Under the pieces are notes generated by a model that saw only the letters and a list, made by a program, of their open reading frames with translations, was not told the origin of the DNA and ran no database searches. Shown here in pieces: positions 11,070 through 24,638 of a stretch of DNA of 64,000 nt. Positions within the stretch are counted from its first letter, which is position 1; every line of letters begins with the position of its first letter. Source of the DNA: Lepidodermella squamata (lineage: Eukaryota > Animalia > Gastrotricha). The translations under genes were made by a program, and so were the position numbers. The stretch covers positions 248,001-312,000 of the forward strand of contig JBLDXI010000042.1 in the NCBI GenBank assembly GCA_047495785.1, given 5' to 3'.

Positions 11070-12275
11070 TTAAGCAGGGGCTACAAGCGAGCGATTAACA
11101 AATCTGTAGTATTTCCGCTGAAGCCATTCCATAATCGGTTTTGTCCAGCCGGGCTTGATCATGAGCACGCAATTTCCAACAACCATTTCCAAAATAATAC
11201 AATACGGCGATACTTTTCCCAAAATTGGATCGACCAATTGCAGCCCGAAATCATACCAAAAATGCTCCATGACAAACGCGAATAGCGCTGGAATGTGGAA
11301 TGTTACGTAGATGAAGAAAACAGCTACAGATTGCTGGGCGAAGAACACCTCACGAGCCCGCCATTCCGCTAGCTTTTCCGCCAGAGATTTCTGCTGCAAG
11401 TTCGAAGAAGCATCACTTTTTTTAGACGGAGCCGATCCACTCGTGTTCGAGCCAACCATTTGCTTCTTAGCCCGCCTGATACAATCGTAGATTTTGTAGT
11501 AGTTCATAGCTAGAAATGAGGCTGGGATGTAAACTGCAGCGGCGTAGTACATCATTAGGATAAAGCCCGAGTCCAAATTGCCGACCAAACGGAAGTGATA
11601 CGGTCCGCAGACCCAGGCGACCCGGCCATCAGGGAATGACAATAATTCCCTTCGCCATGACGCATGAGGCCACAGACCGATGAAAACAGGGGTGATAATG
11701 CAAGCTACAACCATTCCCGCCACCATTCCTAATAGCTTCTTGGTATTAGCTCGGTAGTTAGGGCTGTTTGATAGGATGCAAAGCCGGCGTTCGTAGGAAA
11801 TCAGCATTTTCGTGAAAGTACCGAATGCGCCTGTAGCGTAGAGCAGCCAATAAACCCCTTCGCAAGTCCGGTCGCCCAGATCCCAGGATCCTGTATTTAG
11901 GGTCATCAATAGCCCTACAGTGTGGTCACAAGCGAAGAGAATGTTTCGAACTCCATCGATTGCGACCAGCATTAGCAGCTCCCGTTTCACCCCGCGTTTG
12001 TAGTAGATGTAGCAGCTCAATGTAGTAGTGAATATCACGATTATCGAAGTGATGAGGTATAGCAGAACCCACGATAGGCGGCTTTCGAAAGTTTCGAGAT
12101 AGAAGTTGTGGTACCAGCTGATGAATTGCGGTCTAGGTCCGTCGTAGCCTGCATCGGGTAGGTAAATGCTTACCCAACCATTCTCCAAAAACTTCACCGG
12201 CCTCCCAGTTCGATTCAATGCAGCGCCTCGCTGCACGGATGTCGAGTTTAGAGTAGAGTTCTGAGTTGAATTCAT
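11070..12275 (-). CDS. Orphan class A (rhodopsin-like) GPCR, intronless, 401 aa
   Basis: N-glycosylation-rich N-terminus, seven hydrophobic segments, ECL1 GSWDLGDRTC, TM3 end ISYERR (DRY-like), ECL2 Cys. Confidence 0.85.
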   Translation of the reverse strand: MNSTQNSTLNSTSVQRGAALNRTGRPVKFLENGWVSIYLPDAGYDGPRPQFISWYHNFYLETFESRLSWVLLYLITSIIVIFTTTLSCYIYYKRGVKRELLMLVAIDGVRNILFACDHTVGLLMTLNTGSWDLGDRTCEGVYWLLYATGAFGTFTKMLISYERRLCILSNSPNYRANTKKLLGMVAGMVVACIITPVFIGLWPHASWRRELLSFPDGRVAWVCGPYHFRLVGNLDSGFILMMYYAAAVYIPASFLAMNYYKIYDCIRRAKKQMVGSNTSGSAPSKKSDASSNLQQKSLAEKLAEWRAREVFFAQQSVAVFFIYVTFHIPALFAFVMEHFWYDFGLQLVDPILGKVSPYCIILEMVVGNCVLMIKPGWTKPIMEWLQRKYYRFVNRSLVAPA

Positions 12276-12874: not shown

Positions 12875-14849
12875 TCACGAAAAATTGATTCGCCAGCGGC
12901 CGAATTTTTTAACAGGCGGATGTTTGAACGTGAAGATTGAATTTTTGGAAAAGCTCGCAAGCGCTGACGTCAGAATGACAATCGGGCATATGACGGCAAT
13001 TACCGGTATGAGCTCTGCGCGGAAGCACGTCGATTTCTTGTCGCCACTACCGCAAACCACGCCGCTGTGATGGATAATCTCGAACATGCAGAAACCGAAT
13101 AGAATCGTCGCAACGGCTAGCACAGCACACCAACTTCGCAAATAGCACGAATACTGCAAGCGCATGCGGAAGTTGTAGAAAATGTGGCAATTGTACGACA
13201 GCTGGCAGTAGTCGCACGTCAAATACGGCCAGTCTAATCGATCGGTTAGGCTTAGTTTATCTCGTAACAGCCGTTCGAAGCATAGGTGGTGAACGAAGCC
13301 TTCACATCCGCAAAAGTCTGAGTACACTGGGGCGATCTTGCTTTCGCCTAGGAAGCGGTGCCTACGGCATAGGCTGCATGTTGGTTCGGATTTTTCGTAG
13401 ACTATGTTAAGTCCGACTTCGAGGTGCTGCGATACGTTTCGGTGGAATTTGAAGACGCGACGGCGGGCTAGCAGGGCGCTGAAAAGAATGATTAGCATTA
13501 CGAACCAGATTAGGCCGAGGAATGCGACTAGACCACTGAAAATAGCTCCTGAATTGCAGTCATGGCACCAGGGTATCCAAGAGTGGTGGAAAGCGTGGTA
13601 TCGGAAGATGAGGGCGACTTGAACTGAGGCAGGTATGAGGATCAGTGTCGTGAGGACGAAGATGATGCAGAAAATGTGGCGTAGTGCTGAGTTGGATGGC
13701 CAGCATCCTTGGAACCAGTTGACGTTTCGCCAGAAAAAGTCACTAAATTAGGAATAATTATAAAATTTCTTAGAATTTGGATAACAAATTCGAAATTATT
13801 CCTTATATCACATAAGGAATTACGCTTGTATTTGATTTTAATCTGAAAAAAACAAAAATCCCCAGTTTCGAATTTGGAGAGTTGAAGTTAAAATAAATCC
13901 TGTTTTCCATTCAGTTGATAGCTTTTGATTGGATGCCACAAAGACACAGCAACAAGTATCGGCTCAATAGTCAATAGCCAACTATTTACAACTATTTCTG
14001 GACATTCCTTTCTCTTAAATCTCATGATCGAATTTAGAGAAAACGTCGCTGCGAGCCAAATACTTATCGGGTGTGAAATATGATTATCTCATTTGTCGGG
14101 GATTTTAGCAAAACGCGATACCCCAGGGAATTATCCCCCAGTTTTAATGTTCATAGCGCAAATCGATATCATTCATAGTTATTTCTGAAGCGGGAAATCA
14201 AATTGTCTGAAATTCGAAGATTTTTTAAATTTCACTATTTCGAGTGATACGGTACTTTTTGAGGTTAAAGTTATCGAAATAACGATTCCACTACAGGATT
14301 TATGATATCTTGGTCCCTTACAATTTATCGATAAAAATCCCAGATTTTTCAAATCGCCGTTGATAGATATAAATAGAAATCGCATAAAAATTTCAGATTT
14401 ATTTGAGGATAGAAATTTTGGGCAGCGGGTTAAGTTGAGCCCTAATACTTCGTAGTTTGAGGGTTGAGAAACTCTGTTTTCATGCTTAGCATTGGGATTA
14501 CTGAAAAAATAACTCAACATGCAGCTGTAATTCAGGCTTTTTACCTATTGAAAGGCCGATTGCATTTCGGGCAGCAAATTCTGTTGTAAATATCAACCGT
14601 GAGTTCATCCTTTTGCCGCCGCAGATACTTGTCGAAACACGGAGCGTGGACGTAACTCTGCGCTGCCGGGCACAAGCAAACATTGCCGAACAGCGGAACA
14701 GTGTGAGTCCTGCGGAGAAAAACGAGGAACGACGTCTCATACTGGTAGACGCCGTGGCCACAAAGGCGGCACCGCGGCTCCGCGGCCTCGGCCATTTCGA
14801 CTGCACCCAGCAGCGCTGTGTGGCCTGTTCTGGCTAGCGCTGAAATCAT
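12875..14849 (-). CDS. MARCH-like membrane E3 ligase with two RING-CH (C4HC3) + 2-TM modules (~390 aa)
   Basis: Exon 1 14849-14545 (CRLC..CLC..VHAPC..CPKC). Intron 14544-13743 (gtaaaa..tttag, phase 2). Exon 2 13742-12875 is open: 2 TM, then CSLC..CGC..VHHLC..CDYC, then 2 TM. Start could be the later Met (MAEAAEP). Confidence 0.7.
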
Positions 14850-15077
14850 GACGGCGCAAAATGCTTATACTGCAGTGATATTGCAGTATAATAAAAAGTC
14901 TGATAATACACGCATACTCAATCACTCACGCGCGAGTGATAACAAGACTGATCGCGCTTCATTTTATTGCATACTTGGATATATAGCATGACCGCCACCA
15001 CCAATTATCATTATACCAGACACATAAGTGCCGTGTTTGTTTTTCGCCCTCAACAAATTCGATGTTGCTGCTTTTTT

Positions 15078-16701
15078 TTACAAACTGAAGCGATCGGAGA
15101 AAAATTTGCGCATTCGGTCCAGGAAATAAGGACGGCCTCCGTTTGATTTCTTTGATTCAACAGCCTGGTTTTTGGTTGATGATGGCTTTTGATTAGATTT
15201 GCCAGAATTAGGTCGGGTCACCTTGGACATTCGCGAGTTTGTATTTTTCGCTTGTTTGACGGTCTTCTGAGGCTGCTTAGCTCTACCTACATTTTTCTTG
15301 CCATTTTTACCCCCTTGTGAAACTGGTTTCACGGCCTTTTTCGGGTATTTGGTCGCCTCTTTCTTTGGCTTTGAAAGTTTTGCCGGGGTTTGCTTCGATT
15401 TAACTTTTTTCACCGGTTCCGCTTTCGCAACTTTCTGGGTCTTTGGTTTAACAGTAGAGGTTTGCGGTTTGATGGGAACCGCGGCAACGGGCTTGGCTTG
15501 GGCTGCCTTGTTAGTTTTCTTCGCAGTTGGGTTGAACTTGACATCGATATGGGGCGGCGTTTTCTCGAAAGTATAGGTATAACCGTCTCCATTGGAATAC
15601 TGCTCATCGCCATTGCTCAACTTGCCAATGTATTTGAACTGATTTTTCACGAGCTTTTCCAATCCAGGATTTTGTGACAGGCTGTAGTCAATTTTGTACC
15701 CGGTTGCGTGGGAATATTCGCCGGATTTATGCCCGATTTCAGTGCCGCCGGTTACAACCAAGGTTCGGCCGTAGAGCTGGCGTAGATTTATAGCTGATTG
15801 AACAACTTCAGGCCGCATGCCGTCCAGAGACGTGCACCGCTTGTTAGTTTTATCATTACAATTGCCACTGCTGCTTAGTTTGATACCTTGAAATCAAAAT
15901 GGACACTAGATTTTAGTGAGTTGATAGGTCTCTAAGGAAAATTCAAAATTTATCGATTTTCGACATTTTAGAAGAAAAATTCTTCGAATTTCCGTTTCCT
16001 TTTTTTATTAGCTAAGAGCTAAGAAATGAAGTTTTTAGGATTTTAGATAACGAGAGGATTTGTCTATTTTTTCACGATTTTCTATGTTTTTTTCTAAATT
16101 TACTAAAATATCAGACAAAAAAAGCAAATTAATCTTATAATTTCCGTTGTTCTTCAAAAAATCATAACTTGCCATTTTGTCGAAAAATTTCGTAATTATT
16201 TGAATTTCCCTTTGTTGGAGGTTTCGGCGCAGTTTGAGGGCTTGACACTGGCTTTGCTGGGCTTTGGATAGCGTAAGGCGTTGCAGCCATGCGAGATTGT
16301 ACTTTCGCCCAGTATTTAACGGTAGATTCTGCTCTACAACCTCGCGGGCCTCCGTTGTGGATCCTCGCGAAATCCTGACAAGTCGGCTGGCGATCACTGC
16401 CAACACACCGCTGAGCGTATCGTTTCATATAGTTTTGCACGCATCGCTCGCTGCACTGCATTGAAGCGGCGCATTTCTTCCAGTCTGGATCGACCCCACC
16501 GCCGGGCAGACAGTCTTTATGGTAGTCTTCCTTGATTTGATACGGCCCGCATGACAGCGAATTGACATCATATTTACAACCGGTTTGAGCCGCGTTGCAG
16601 CCGCTTTCTTGAACGCAGATGGCCTTCAGGCAAGAGCCATCAACATCGGCATTTGCTATGGCTAAAATAGCTGATAAAATTATCGAAAAAATCCAGACCA
16701 T
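15078..16701 (-). CDS. Secreted i-type lysozyme (destabilase-like) fused to an M15/LAS-like Zn-peptidase domain and a Lys-rich tail (~445 aa)
   Basis: Exon 1 16701-16173: signal peptide, CLKAICVQESGC, SLSCGPYQIK, FARIHNGGPRGC. GC-AG intron 16172-15887 (gcaagt..ttcaag, phase 1). Exon 2 15886-15078: GIKLSSSGNCND..CTSLDG..VTGGTEIGH..SHATGYKID..PHID. Both domains are well supported; the fusion depends on the GC donor. Confidence 0.72.
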
Positions 16702-16971
16702 GTTGATATGGGAAAATAATATTGTAAATTCTCGCAGCTGCGGGCAATTTTCAAAGGGGCGTGGGTGTTTAGCCATATTTTTGTCCTTCCCACGAATTTT
16801 AACAGCTACATATACAACTTTATCACGGCACCTGAAGTCTCTCAGCTTACAAAAAGAAGAATAATCATGAAAATAACGCATTTACAAACATTCTTTTTTA
16901 TTTGATAAAAACGGTACTTGTGCTATATTTCAATGCTAATATTTGTGAATCTGTCAAGTGAAAGTGGGTAA

Positions 16972-17541
16972 TTATAATTGAGAGACTAAAATGGAAGCTT
17001 TTGCTGTAGCAGATTCAAAATTTCGTCTATCCAGCTTTTTCACGTCTTTATGAAGAGTTAAAATAGGAAGGTTGCCACATAGTCCTGGTAAGAAGGCGCA
17101 ATTCGCAAAAAATGTGAAAGCGCATTGAAATACAATGATAATCAAGGAAAAAATGCAGAGAAATAGCTCAGGTGATATGGGGAAAAAGTTGCCCGAACTT
17201 GACACACAGCAATATGAGTACAGCGTATAAACTGAAGGAGCGAGGATGATATTAGCGATCAGCAACAGTAAAGCCGATTTTGAATGAAAAAAACGAACAG
17301 GTAAAGTGTGAAAAATCTTGCATTTAAACGGCTGGTCACACTCTCCACAAACTGGCGGCAAATTAGATGGGTTTGATCGAATAAAATTCTCGAAGCAAAT
17401 TCGATGAATATAACAGGCTTCGCATGAACAAATGCTTTCGTATAATTCACCAGTATTAGTAGCTAAATTGCTGCCAGGTCTCATGAAAGTTTGATTCGGA
17501 CCCAACTTGCAAAATCGGCAAACAGGCTCTAAAAGGGCCAT
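16972..17541 (-). CDS. RING-CH (MARCH-like) protein with two TM segments, 189 aa
   Basis: MALLEPVCRFC..CSC..YIHRIC..CGEC followed by two hydrophobic segments; paralog at 20105-20662. Confidence 0.8.
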   Translation of the reverse strand: MALLEPVCRFCKLGPNQTFMRPGSNLATNTGELYESICSCEACYIHRICFENFIRSNPSNLPPVCGECDQPFKCKIFHTLPVRFFHSKSALLLLIANIILAPSVYTLYSYCCVSSSGNFFPISPELFLCIFSLIIIVFQCAFTFFANCAFLPGLCGNLPILTLHKDVKKLDRRNFESATAKASILVSQL

Positions 17542-18073
17542 TTGAAATAAGCTGAAAGATTGAAATTCTGTGTGGATCAGCCATCGTGCCACATTTATAG
17601 GCATGAGGTAATGCGAAAATCAATAAGCGGAACCTCGCGTAGTGTGCGTCTAGACCGTACAAAATCAAAACATGCGAGTGACCTCACGCAATGAATCATC
17701 GTCTTACGCACTTGCGCACCTGAAGTCTTGCAATAAAATGAATTATTTTATTATTTTATTATTTTATTATTTATTCGTTATCGCAAGTGCACTTTTCATG
17801 CGTATGCAATTAGCCAGCCAGGCGCCTCACTGAGGATAAAAGATATTCGTCTAAATTACATAATGTTCGCTAAAAAGATGTTCGCTAGCATAATTTGATT
17901 TCGAAAATTCATAGAAGTCGTCAAAATTGACATCATAGAAGTGGTGATATAGCTTATAAGTTAATTTCAAATCATTTTTAAAGCGACGCTTTTCCAAGGA
18001 GTCCATCCCACTAGGTTTTAATAAACACTCATAAGTAATATGGGATTAACGAGGTATATAAATGTAGGAAATA

Positions 18074-20104: not shown

Positions 20105-20662
20105 TTATTGTCGAGAGATATATTTGGAAGCTTGCGCCGAAGCAGAATCAAAATTTCGCCTATCGACTGTTTTCACATCTTCATGAAGATTCAAAATTGG
20201 AAGTTTTCGATATAAATTCGGTACAAATATTATGTTGGCGAATAATGTCAAAGCAAATGGAACTATAATGATGATGAATGCTAAAGCGCAGGGCACAAGT
20301 TGATGCCATGATGCCACACAGCAGAAATAGAACGACGTAACTACTAAAGGAAGGAGCAGGAAATTAGCAAACAGCAAGATTCGTGCCGATTTTGAATTCA
20401 ATAACCGAGCTATAACATTGTGGAGAATCTTGCATTTGAATGGCGTATTGCAGTCTCCACATATCGGAGGCAAGTTACCGCGATCTGATGCGTTTGATCG
20501 TATAAAATTCTCAAAGCAATCTCGATGAATGTAATTGGCTTCGCATGAACATATGTTTTTATATAATTCACCAGTGTTACTAGCTATGCTGCTGCCAGGT
20601 CTCATGAAAGTTTGATTAGGACCCAACTTGCAAAATCGGCAAACAGGCTCTAAAAGGGCCAT
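20105..20662 (-). CDS. RING-CH (MARCH-like) protein with two TM segments, 185 aa (duplicate of 16972-17541)
   Basis: Same C4HC3 pattern; flanks 19981-20848 align with 16861-17716. Confidence 0.8.
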   Translation of the reverse strand: MALLEPVCRFCKLGPNQTFMRPGSSIASNTGELYKNICSCEANYIHRDCFENFIRSNASDRGNLPPICGDCNTPFKCKILHNVIARLLNSKSARILLFANFLLLPLVVTSFYFCCVASWHQLVPCALAFIIIIVPFALTLFANIIFVPNLYRKLPILNLHEDVKTVDRRNFDSASAQASKYISRQ

Positions 20663-21022: not shown

Positions 21023-22099
21023 ATGACGACAGTTTTAACAAGAAATCTTGTACCGATCCAGCCAGTTTCGCAACGGGGCAAAAAGTCACCCGAAAGTTAC
21101 TTGGAGGAGGGTAGGCCAAGACATTTCTTATACTCATTTTTGCCTCACTTTATCCAATTTTAGCCCGCCAAGTTGTTGCTTTGCTGTACAGCGCTTCTCG
21201 GGGCGATGTAAATGCCCTGCGAGATCTGAAATCAAAAGGCTACAACATGGGGAAAGCTGACTATGACGGCCGGACTTCACTACACGTGAGTGCGGCGGAG
21301 GGACATATTGAGGTTGTGCGGTACCTGGTTGACGAGTGCCATTTGAATCCGTTCCCGCGGGACCGTTGGAATTTTACGCCTCTGGACGATGCAGAGAAAT
21401 TCGAACGGGCTGAGGTTGTGGAATTTTTGAAACTTCGAGCTGCTCATGGATCAGTCGAAGAAACAAACGAAGGTAACTTATATTGTGTAATCTTAACACT
21501 TAAATTATTAATTTTTTAAATAGCCGAAATAATAAAAAAATTCAAGAAATTACTTAATAGCTCAATTTTTAAACCAAATTTTAATTTCATTATTTATTCA
21601 TAAAATTTCTCACTTTAAGCAAATTATTCTAGCCTTATGATTTTTCGTTTTTTCAGATACTAAAGTAGTAGCTGTACTGTTTGCTGCCTCGAAGGGTGAC
21701 ACAACAGCTTTGAACCAATTTATTGGCAAAGGCTACGACATAACGAAAGCAGACTATGATGGGCGAACAGCTCTTCACCTGGCAGCTGCCGAGGGCCATT
21801 TGGATACCGTGAAGTTCCTAATTGAAGAGTTTCGCGTTGAAAGGACTCTAAAGGATCGATGGGGGTTCACAGCTTTGGATGATTCGGTGAAATTTGGCCG
21901 TCGTGAGGTGGCTGCTTATCTTCATGGGAAAGAGCCAATGGCTAAGCTGAGTTCGTCTCATCCACCCGAAGGCGAGATCACTATGGAAATCATCGAGAAA
22001 GTAATTCCGATTGAAGCTGAGCCGATTGAAATTGCAGCTAAGACTGAATCACCCGCAATCGCCGAGGAGCCTCAGAGCGAGAAATTAGCTGATGAATGA
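21023..22099 (+). CDS. Stand-alone protein of two glutaminase-type ankyrin modules (~279 aa)
   Basis: Exons 21023-21110, 21164-21472 and 21657-22099 are all phase-compatible GT-AG. Each module has ADYDGRT(S/A)LH.(S/A)AAEGH..DRW.FT.LDD, the signature of the glutaminase C-terminal ankyrin region. No catalytic domain is visible. Confidence 0.7.
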
Positions 22100-23957: not shown

Positions 23958-24638
23958 ATGGCTGATACAAAATTGCTCGTGACACTAGTCGTTGTAGTAT
24001 CTACAATATCGCTTATACACGGTGACGCATGGCTCGATTTCGACGTGTATTACTTTGAATATTACCAGAAAAAATTATCGAATTTCTGCGCGATTGGCAA
24101 TTCAACCGAAGTCGGACGGCTTTTGCTTGGAGAACCACAGCTTAATGTTAACTGGCGATGGCCGGCTCGATTAACGTGTTCCAACGGCTGTTTTTGCCTG
24201 CAGAATGCTACACCCCTACTTCGAGTTTCGGCCTGTAGGAACAACGCGAAATTTCGATATGCTACAGCCTATCTTTTGATAAATCACGGCGCAGATCCTA
24301 ATCTCAGCGAAACGTCAAGTGGTTTTACTCCGCTTTTCCTCGCCTGTTCGAACGGCCTGGTTTCTATTGTCCGGCTTCTTCTGAACAACAACGCCGCAAT
24401 TGAGGAGCGAAATATCTATGGAGAAACGGCGCTGATGGCCGCGGCGGGTGATGGTAGTTTGGAAATTGTGAAATTGCTGCTAGATCGAGGGGCTGAAATC
24501 GATGCGGTGGATGATAGTGGGAATTCGGCCCTAATTCATGCTGCCTTCCACGAAAATACTGTTGTTGTTAGGGAACTTCTTAGTCGAAATGCTTCATTTG
24601 ACAACTGCCTTTTCCCTGCTTGCTACGGCATCGCCTAA
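23958..24638 (+). CDS. Ankyrin-repeat protein with N-terminal signal peptide, 226 aa
   Basis: Hydrophobic leader LLVTLVVVVSTISLIHG; ankyrin repeats GFTPLFLAC, GETALMAAA, GNSALIHAA. Confidence 0.8.
   Translation: MADTKLLVTLVVVVSTISLIHGDAWLDFDVYYFEYYQKKLSNFCAIGNSTEVGRLLLGEPQLNVNWRWPARLTCSNGCFCLQNATPLLRVSACRNNAKFRYATAYLLINHGADPNLSETSSGFTPLFLACSNGLVSIVRLLLNNNAAIEERNIYGETALMAAAGDGSLEIVKLLLDRGAEIDAVDDSGNSALIHAAFHENTVVVRELLSRNASFDNCLFPACYGIA

Follow-up and report, generated by a model that had tools for sequence, protein, structure and literature searches.

Invertebrate-type (i-type) lysozymes, also known as destabilases (PF05497), have solved structures such as 8bbu, 3ab6 and 2dqa, with chains of 122-124 residues. 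The catalytic role of their Glu and Asp is known from the Tapes japonica lysozyme. Proteins of the LAS fold (MEROPS clan MD) include the M15 peptidases VanX, VanY, LdcB and YcbK, the M74 peptidase MepA, phage L-Ala-D-Glu peptidases and the N-terminal domain of Hedgehog, in which the H-x6-D residues are zinc ligands. Modular phage endolysins and virion-associated lysins combine a glycosidase with a peptidase. A gene which brings these elements together was found in the gastrotrich Lepidodermella squamata. It lies on the minus strand of a stretch of 64,000 nucleotides (the window; positions 248,001 to 312,000 of contig JBLDXI010000042.1, assembly GCA_047495785.1). An i-type lysozyme is fused to a domain of microbial type, which is predicted to have the LAS fold, and to a Lys-rich tail. 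The gene is expressed, and its 445-aa product is probably a secreted modular enzyme resembling an endolysin, with the LAS module predicted to cut. Coordinates of all features are given in Table 1.

The two parts of the gene are joined by splicing. Three sequencing runs (X1, X2 and X3) were all taken as contigs, the depth of which is a rough guide to abundance only. X1 and X3 come from different studies; their RNA nature is read from the pattern of coverage and is not stated in the records. X2 is regarded as genomic DNA, because its contigs (up to 130 kb) cover everything, including the intron and the flanks. X1 depth is 20-65 over the exons and neighbouring genes and 0-9 over intergenic DNA. 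Within the gene it is 34-65 in the exons and 2.5-3.4 in the intron, or about 5-8% of exon depth. X3 covers the two exons only; the intron has no coverage. The X1 contig lacks 286 nt between 15885 and 16172. The gap has 2 nt of slack and hence three possible placements, among which only 16172..15887 has near-canonical ends (GC..AG). In the X3 contig starting at 16172, 16 unplaced letters are the exact reverse complement of the start of exon 2.

The donor is GC (ATG|GCAAGT), the acceptor is AG, and the junction from 16173 to 15886 is in phase 1. The DNA by itself leaves the splice site undecided, because two GT-AG combinations also keep the frame (donor 16169/16168 with acceptor 15873 or 15870); the reads decide. 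Both of these pairs are ruled out by the 16173/15886 junction in the two RNA-like contigs. The spliced open reading frame (ORF) is 1338 nt long (445 codons, 445 aa), and its sole stop is terminal. X1 coverage begins near the ATG at 16701; an upstream in-frame ATG at 16881 is disfavoured because the X1 bin 16694-16807 is empty. The intron contains weak AT-rich repeats and nothing more in the way of structure. That the fusion gene is real and expressed is beyond reasonable doubt. A first-pass annotation of the window had proposed a secreted destabilase, a Pro-rich linker, a second domain and a Lys-rich tail, joined across a GC-AG intron in matching phase. The X1 joint and the X3 loose end bear out the intron, and the spliced ORF bears out the fusion.

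The first module appears to be an ordinary and active animal i-type lysozyme, judging from its alignments. Exon 1 matches PF05497 with an E value of 9.2e-29 (100.5 bits; the curated cut-off is 26.2). The closest solved structures are leech destabilase (8bbu, 1e-33) and the bivalve lysozymes 3ab6 (1.6e-29), 4pj2 and 2dqa (3e-26). By language-model features the lysozyme lies closest to the Atlas cluster 'Invertebrate-type lysozyme', which is mostly from Mollusca (score 0.96). The Glu of ESG, the downstream Asp (KYDV) and HNGGP, which the first-pass annotation had described as retained, do align to those of solved i-type lysozymes (Glu and Asp to 3ab6 and 8bbu). There is no second copy (paralogue) of either the destabilase or the LAS-like domain within the window.

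The second module is harder to place. No Pfam or NCBIfam model matched the exon-2 domain, no PDB entry matched it by sequence, and a word-indexed protein search with the domain alone or with exon 2 region 1-115 came back blank. An exhaustive HMMER search of 1.84 billion representatives recovered 761 proteins at E<=1e-3, of which 198 reach E<=1e-10; the top match has an E value of 1e-21 and 46% identity. In a family alignment of 91 sequences, the invariant or nearly invariant columns are S5, G7, C9, C17-T-S, T45-G-G-T-E49, G51-H52, G55, S58-H59, G62, K64, D66, G92, E107 and H112-W-D114. The gastrotrich domain retains every one of these except W113, which is Ile; H-I-D is also present in a phage tail protein (L087). 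Most members have E-x2-H, and the exon-2 domain and several bacterial members have E-x4-H, with an insertion of 2 residues. The series SSSGNC..CTSL..TGGTExGH..SHxxGYKxD..HID had been picked out earlier by eye; its motifs (SSGNC..CTSL, TGGTEIGH, SHATGYKID and HID) are present and fall on nearly invariant columns of the alignment. A hidden Markov model (HMM) of the family matches the spliced protein at 5.5e-43. The exon-2 domain matches none of the Pfam M15 models (PF08291, PF05951, PF02557, PF13539, PF01427) or HH, nor does any of the 91 members even at E<=1. The domain belongs to a separate, unnamed LAS-fold family and is not a member of Pfam M15. Five of the 91 sequences have weak matches to Hom_end (PF05204; best E 0.0011), which are taken as chance.

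The fold was assigned from a model. AlphaFold2 with the family alignment gave a predicted local distance difference test score (pLDDT) of 93 and a predicted template modelling score of 0.84; a single-sequence model was useless (pLDDT 42) and was rejected. In an exhaustive VIA-align comparison, LAS-fold proteins make up ten of the first eleven rows and 14 of the top 23. The top match is the N-terminal domain of Sonic hedgehog (ShhN), with Z 7.0, a root-mean-square deviation of 2.8, 91 residues aligned and 23% identity. Other Z values are 5.8 for VldE, 5.5 for Drosophila Hedgehog, 4.9 for the Streptomyces albus Zn DD-peptidase, 4.7 for MepA, 4.5 for LdcB and 4.1-4.3 for DacB, Ply500 and LysB4. 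VanXYg, VanX and VanXYc rank 16, 17 and 23 (Z 3.6-3.8), and the T5 L-Ala-D-Glu peptidase ranks 47 (Z 3.3). An Atlas structure search returned the family's own actinobacterial clusters at a template modelling (TM) score of 0.87-0.90, a YcbK cluster (Peptidase_M15_3/M15_2) at 0.62 and a phage VanY/M15_4 cluster at 0.61. Matches to viral models in Foldseek are weak but enriched in LAS proteins. The family profile aligns on TEGWDEDGHH...SLHYEGRAVD of Sonic and Indian hedgehog, with an E value of about 1 that is not significant alone.

Two results weigh against this assignment. Foldseek found nothing in the PDB at E<=0.001, and single Z values in VIA-align are modest, the best (7) being in a range that the tool itself calls common. 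What is persuasive is the consistency of the VIA-align matches rather than any single Z value. The model, VIA-align and the Atlas all point the same way, and the exon-2 domain very probably has a LAS fold with an H-x6-D motif. The third zinc ligand is presumed to be H112 or D114. The first-pass annotation had read the motif as the zinc site of LAS/M15 metallopeptidases and had suggested Foldseek as a check. The LAS fold holds in the structural model and the H-x6-D in the family alignment; membership of Pfam M15 does not hold, as no Pfam M15 model matches. The Foldseek check itself was mixed: its best PDB rows are LAS proteins (VldE, Indian and Desert hedgehog and MepA), but they fall short of the threshold.

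The family is found mostly in bacteria. At least 590 loci were detected in bacterial reference genomes (scanned with a 13-sequence alignment), mostly in Streptomyces, Nocardioides, Kutzneria and Kitasatospora, with one Paceibacterota genome; they are 41-48% identical to the gastrotrich domain. Further named bacterial members come from a Polyangia metagenome-assembled genome (MAG), a 'Pseudomonadota bacterium' MAG, a Verrucomicrobiae genome and Candidatus Sungbacteria. Overall, named members span Actinomycetota, candidate-phyla (CPR) bacteria, four fungal phyla and bdelloid rotifers. The fungi are Ceratobasidium, Coprinopsis, Xylariaceae, Poronia and Gryganskiella, with Zoopagomycota in one Atlas cluster. 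The rotifers are Adineta steineri (P0221, 151 aa, on a 569-kb contig) and a Rotaria species (P0227, 154 aa, on an 8.8-Mb contig). Named eukaryotic members are short standalone proteins with a signal-like hydrophobic leader. The expectation that the family occurs mainly in bacteria and fungi was correct for both groups; rotifers have to be added. One fungal member, CC1G_05638 of Coprinopsis cinerea, has a signal peptide, is 67-fold up and is listed in a table of vegetative-mycelium-specific defence loci (PMC4082614).

Domain partners in bacteria include PG_binding_1 and PG_binding_3 in actinobacteria (one actinobacterial Atlas cluster of the family always has both) and WXG100 in others. WXG100 is a hallmark of type VII secretion substrates. 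CPR-type members have a T4SS_pilin partner. Some also have an SLT-like C-terminal region according to Atlas features only; Pfam and PDB sequence searches gave it no support. No destabilase domain is present in any of the 150 best relatives of exon 2. In phages, tblastn found no match in GenBank records, and IMG/VR yielded seven partial relatives. These are proteins of 950-1900 residues with a related core near the C-terminus (local E 2.5e-15 to 2.7e-6 against the family alignment, in a five-sequence set). The core consists of a helix, TGGTExGH, SHxxGYKxD and then H-Y/I/L-D, and is a shortened version of the LAS-like core. The two proteins scanned against PHROGs (L082 and L086) match tape-measure and lytic-tail families. 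In three phage proteins the core lies just downstream of Phage_lysozyme2 (8.8e-21), Glucosaminidase (5.5e-10) or SLT (7.5e-10). The core of these tape-measure-like proteins appears to be an unannotated phage-tail lysin module. Because it follows three different glycan-cutting domains, the pairing of a glycosidase with a LAS-like domain has arisen repeatedly. The gastrotrich gene is a further case, in which the glycosidase is an i-type lysozyme.

Zinc binding, peptidase activity, the bond attacked, the role of the tail and the biological use are what we infer for this protein. The lysozyme would cut the glycan strands of peptidoglycan, and the LAS-fold domain after the linker, which resembles zinc peptidases, would most likely cut peptide stems or cross-links. 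Glycan and peptide cuts together would dissolve the wall better than either alone. The cationic, disordered tail would probably hold the enzyme on anionic bacterial envelopes or aid in crossing them. The purpose may be to kill bacteria in defence or to digest bacterial food. Given the residues retained and the predicted fold, it is rather likely that the LAS module works as a peptidase that acts on peptidoglycan. A more specific scenario is a self-made endolysin, in which a LAS peptidase of interbacterial-weapon or phage-tail type was captured and acquired an intron, and in which this peptidase, a native lysozyme and an envelope-binding or outer-membrane-breaching tail, all in a single secreted protein, attack glycan, peptide and envelope at once; the design would be convergent with that of phage tail lysins. 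This can be put forward only tentatively.

Several points weigh against a cutting LAS module. The family has no match to Pfam M15 or HH models, no biochemical characterisation of any member was found in the literature, and the exon-2 domain has E-x4-H-I-D where the family usually has E-x2-H-W-D. Hedgehog also demonstrates that a LAS fold can serve for binding. It may be, though it is unlikely, that the module does not cut and instead binds peptidoglycan stems and steers the lysozyme to its target, a use of the fold like that of Hedgehog. The fold does include non-enzymatic members, ShhN is the top structural match, and both W113I and the 2-residue insertion before the His are departures from the family. 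Against this, E49, H52, H59, D66, E107, H112 and D114 are all kept. The same insertion is found in many bacterial members, H-I-D occurs in the phage tail protein, and the bacterial and phage partners are those of catalytic lysin domains. Peptide cutting by the LAS module is the preferred interpretation.

The long Lys-rich tail noted in the first-pass annotation is present: it contains 36 Lys in 153 aa, with 7 Arg, 14 Pro and 5 acidic residues, and has an isoelectric point of 11.2. It matches no family in Pfam or NCBIfam, and its C-terminus includes a short, amphipathic-looking segment. Cationic extensions are known on some phage lysins. By analogy with these and with cationic antimicrobial peptides, the likeliest role of the tail would be to bind or permeabilise anionic envelopes.

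A second, diverged version of the gene is present in all three runs. In X1 the divergence amounts to about 1% in the lysozyme, 6% in the LAS domain and 10% in part of the tail, the tail being the most variable part. Eighteen of the 26 listed differences in the coding sequence are synonymous, and there are no indels in the coding sequence. In the LAS domain there are 11 synonymous and 4 conservative differences (K/R, Y/F, N/S, I/V). Differences which are mostly synonymous or conservative, in a coding sequence free of indels, mark the LAS domain as being under purifying selection. The second version is seen at 15289-15788 and elsewhere in 14500-17700, and its divergence varies from region to region (1-10%), which indicates either strong heterozygosity or a recent duplicate.

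The LAS-like domain is likely to have been acquired horizontally. Transfer is favoured because the distribution is mostly bacterial, patchy in eukaryotes and without other animals; among the named relatives, bdelloid rotifers are the sole other animals. The horizontal origin proposed in the first-pass annotation is thus supported by the distribution, and vertical orthologues across animals were not seen. The phylogeny is based on 119 columns. In both a quick and a careful tree the branch of the gastrotrich domain is long (0.9-1.0 changes per site) and no partner has support; the lack of a supported bacterial sister group, and so of a donor clade, counts against transfer. In the quick tree, eukaryotic sequences lie interspersed with bacterial ones. 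In the careful tree, rotifer genes are in a supported set of five rows (98/87), and the nearest rows by path are P0032 and P0036; the quick tree joins the same rows with P0056. P0032, P0036 and P0158 (L001, GCA_037189345.1) are eukaryote-looking members with a Cys-rich, repeated N-terminal region. A clade of gastrotrich and rotifer genes is not rejected by the approximately unbiased test (p-AU 0.65), and its likelihood is higher than that of the quick free search. The transfer may have been a single old one shared with rotifers, or it may have been independent. The gene is well settled in its host: its G+C (0.42-0.47) is like that of the surrounding DNA, it has a spliceosomal intron, and an animal G-protein-coupled receptor (GPCR) gene is nearby.

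An ancient, vertically inherited eukaryotic domain which has been lost in most animals is an improbable explanation. It would account for members in several fungal phyla, in rotifers and in this gastrotrich, and for the position of the gastrotrich domain outside any supported bacterial clade, in a permissible clade with rotifers. It fits poorly with hundreds of bacterial loci against a handful of eukaryotic lineages, with the absence of other animals among named matches, and with the scatter of eukaryotic sequences among bacterial ones. Rotifers and fungi are also known to receive bacterial genes.

The intron does not mark the seam between the animal and microbial parts. When the family HMM was lengthened by 30 residues at its N-terminus, the alignment began at spliced residue 166, some 11 residues ahead of the junction. 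Including the 20 residues that precede the junction raises the score by 8.8 bits, a gain which exceeds all 300 of 300 shuffles of these residues (mean 2.0 bits, sd 1.3) and all 100 of 100 other 20-mers from the same protein. The intron splits the codon of a conserved Gly in 'aGI' of the family (Gly in 93% of members). Because family homology runs about 11 residues upstream of the junction, the intron lies inside the microbial-type module. By this alignment the seam is in the Pro-rich linker within exon 1, and the earlier description of exon 2 as the acquired peptidase has to be amended: the exon 2 domain does belong to a microbial-type family, but the acquired piece starts in exon 1. Either the acquired sequence already had the intron when it arrived, or it gained the intron afterwards. 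In the unspliced reading there is an in-frame stop (16164-16162) three codons past the donor; it is probably incidental and not the old lysozyme stop.

It is quite improbable that the main product is the lysozyme alone, made from an unspliced message ending at 16162, with the spliced fusion a minor or accidental form. The closeness of this stop to the donor, a donor that is GC and not GT, and the low but non-zero X1 depth in the intron would suit this explanation. However, the transcript is spliced in runs of two studies. The intron reaches a small fraction of exon depth in X1 and none in X3 (though contig depth is a rough measure here as well), exon 2 is no less well covered than exon 1 and its changes are mostly synonymous, and family homology crosses the junction. 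An assembly chimera or bacterial contamination is effectively refuted, as a spliceosomal intron joins both parts in RNA-like contigs of two studies, X2 DNA contigs span the intron and flanks, G+C is like that of the neighbours, the best bacterial identity is 48%, and animal genes flank the locus.

Table 1. Features of the lysozyme-LAS fusion gene, its neighbours in the window and related phage proteins
Feature	Position	Strand	Basis
Start codon (ATG at 16701) and 18-aa hydrophobic signal-like peptide	16648..16701	minus	Read from the sequence by inspection
Exon 1: signal-like peptide, i-type lysozyme, Pro-rich linker, start of microbial-type module	16701-16173	minus	
Destabilase / i-type lysozyme domain, residues 23-135	16297..16635	minus	Pfam PF05497, PDB alignments, Atlas cluster
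Pro-rich linker, about residues 138-165	16207..16290	minus	Composition of translation; no family match
End of exon 1, about 11 residues aligning to N-terminal helix of microbial-type family	16173..16206	minus	Extended family HMM
Intron, GC-AG, phase 1, 286 nt	16172-15887	minus	X1 contig joint and X3 contig loose end
Exon 2: 115-aa domain, then 153-aa Lys-rich tail	15886-15078	minus	
Predicted LAS-fold (Hedgehog/DD-peptidase-like) domain, unnamed bacterial/fungal/rotifer family	15540..15886	minus	HMMER family, AlphaFold2 model, VIA-align, Atlas
TGGTEIGH motif, domain residues 45-52	15729..15752	minus	Nearly invariant in 91-sequence alignment; aligns to TEGWDEDGH of Sonic/Indian hedgehog
H59-x6-D66 (SHATGYKID), presumed zinc ligands	15687..15710	minus	Nearly invariant; aligns to LHYEGRAVD of Sonic hedgehog
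E107-x4-H112-I-D114, presumed catalytic Glu and third ligand	15543..15566	minus	Family alignment; family form E-x2/4-H-W-D
Lys/Pro-rich cationic tail, 153 aa, probably disordered	15081..15539	minus	Composition
Stop codon	15078..15080	minus	Sequence, spliced ORF
AATAAA, probable poly(A) signal	14963..14968	minus	Sequence; just before X1 contig end at 14954 (X1 record 1, 14954-15318)
Intronless 401-aa ORF, rhodopsin-family GPCR (7tm_1, 3.2e-8)	11070-12275	minus	Pfam
Small single-exon ORF family, dispersed or tandem, around the lysozyme gene	12875-13498, 14541-14849, 16972-17604, 20105-20662	minus	
Phage tape-measure-like proteins, glycan hydrolase then LAS-like core	L082 1685-4519; L084 1697-4558; L086 1799-4747		IMG/VR contigs

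The small ORFs around the gene encode proteins with a Cys/His-rich N-terminal motif (CRFC...C.C...H..C...C..C, RING-variant-like) followed by hydrophobic segments. They have no Pfam match; those at 16972-17604 and 20105-20662 are clear paralogues. X1 RNA-like contigs span 14528-14755 and 16922-17605. On the plus strand there are ORFs with the look of ankyrin repeats at 21181-22099 and 23958-24638.

The significance of the gene is best seen against the systems described above. No published lysozyme-LAS fusion of this kind was found in the literature. With the i-type lysozymes it shares a signal peptide, the Cys framework, the catalytic Glu and Asp, and HNGGP; compared to the solved chains, it adds a linker, a second putative catalytic domain and a 153-aa cationic tail. 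With LAS proteins it shares the predicted fold, the H-x6-D, a distal Glu...His and cell-wall contexts. Unlike them, the family has its own signature (SSGxC...CTS) and matches none of their Pfam models, and its role as a zinc peptidase is a prediction. It has HWD where Sonic hedgehog has H-x-H. Other LAS enzymes also have H-x-H, and M15A-type enzymes have SGYR where this family has TGGTExGH. A large LAS-fold family which has no Pfam model is thus brought to notice, with WXG100-linked bacterial members, CPR pilin fusions, and phage tape-measure, fungal and rotifer members. The small, secreted and easily expressed animal protein is a handy entry point for finding which bond the family cuts.

The standalone eukaryotic members (Adineta steineri, Rotaria, Coprinopsis CC1G_05638, Ceratobasidium, Xylariaceae, Poronia and Gryganskiella) are 44-49% identical to the gastrotrich domain and likewise have a signal-like leader. 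However, they are single-domain proteins of 151-163 aa, with neither a lysozyme nor a cationic tail. Domestication of bacterial antibacterial genes is known from the dae genes of ticks and mites, which derive from the Tae effectors of type VI secretion systems, and from transferred GH25 lysozymes. As in those cases, a bacterial family of putative wall-degrading effectors, some members of which are linked to WXG100, is patchily distributed and expressed in eukaryotes. Here a different enzyme family is concerned, and rather than being used alone it shares one polypeptide with a native immune or digestive enzyme. Transfer of bacterial wall hydrolases into eukaryotes was already known; in this gene the foreign domain is fused with a native animal lysozyme, an arrangement which mirrors the two-enzyme design of phage lysins and offers a natural template for engineered lysins with cationic tails. 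The architecture of glycosidase plus putative peptidase, and presumably its logic, is the same as in modular phage endolysins and virion-associated lysins, whereas in the gastrotrich an animal lysozyme serves as the glycosidase, a spliceosomal intron interrupts the gene, and the product is an animal protein that is secreted.

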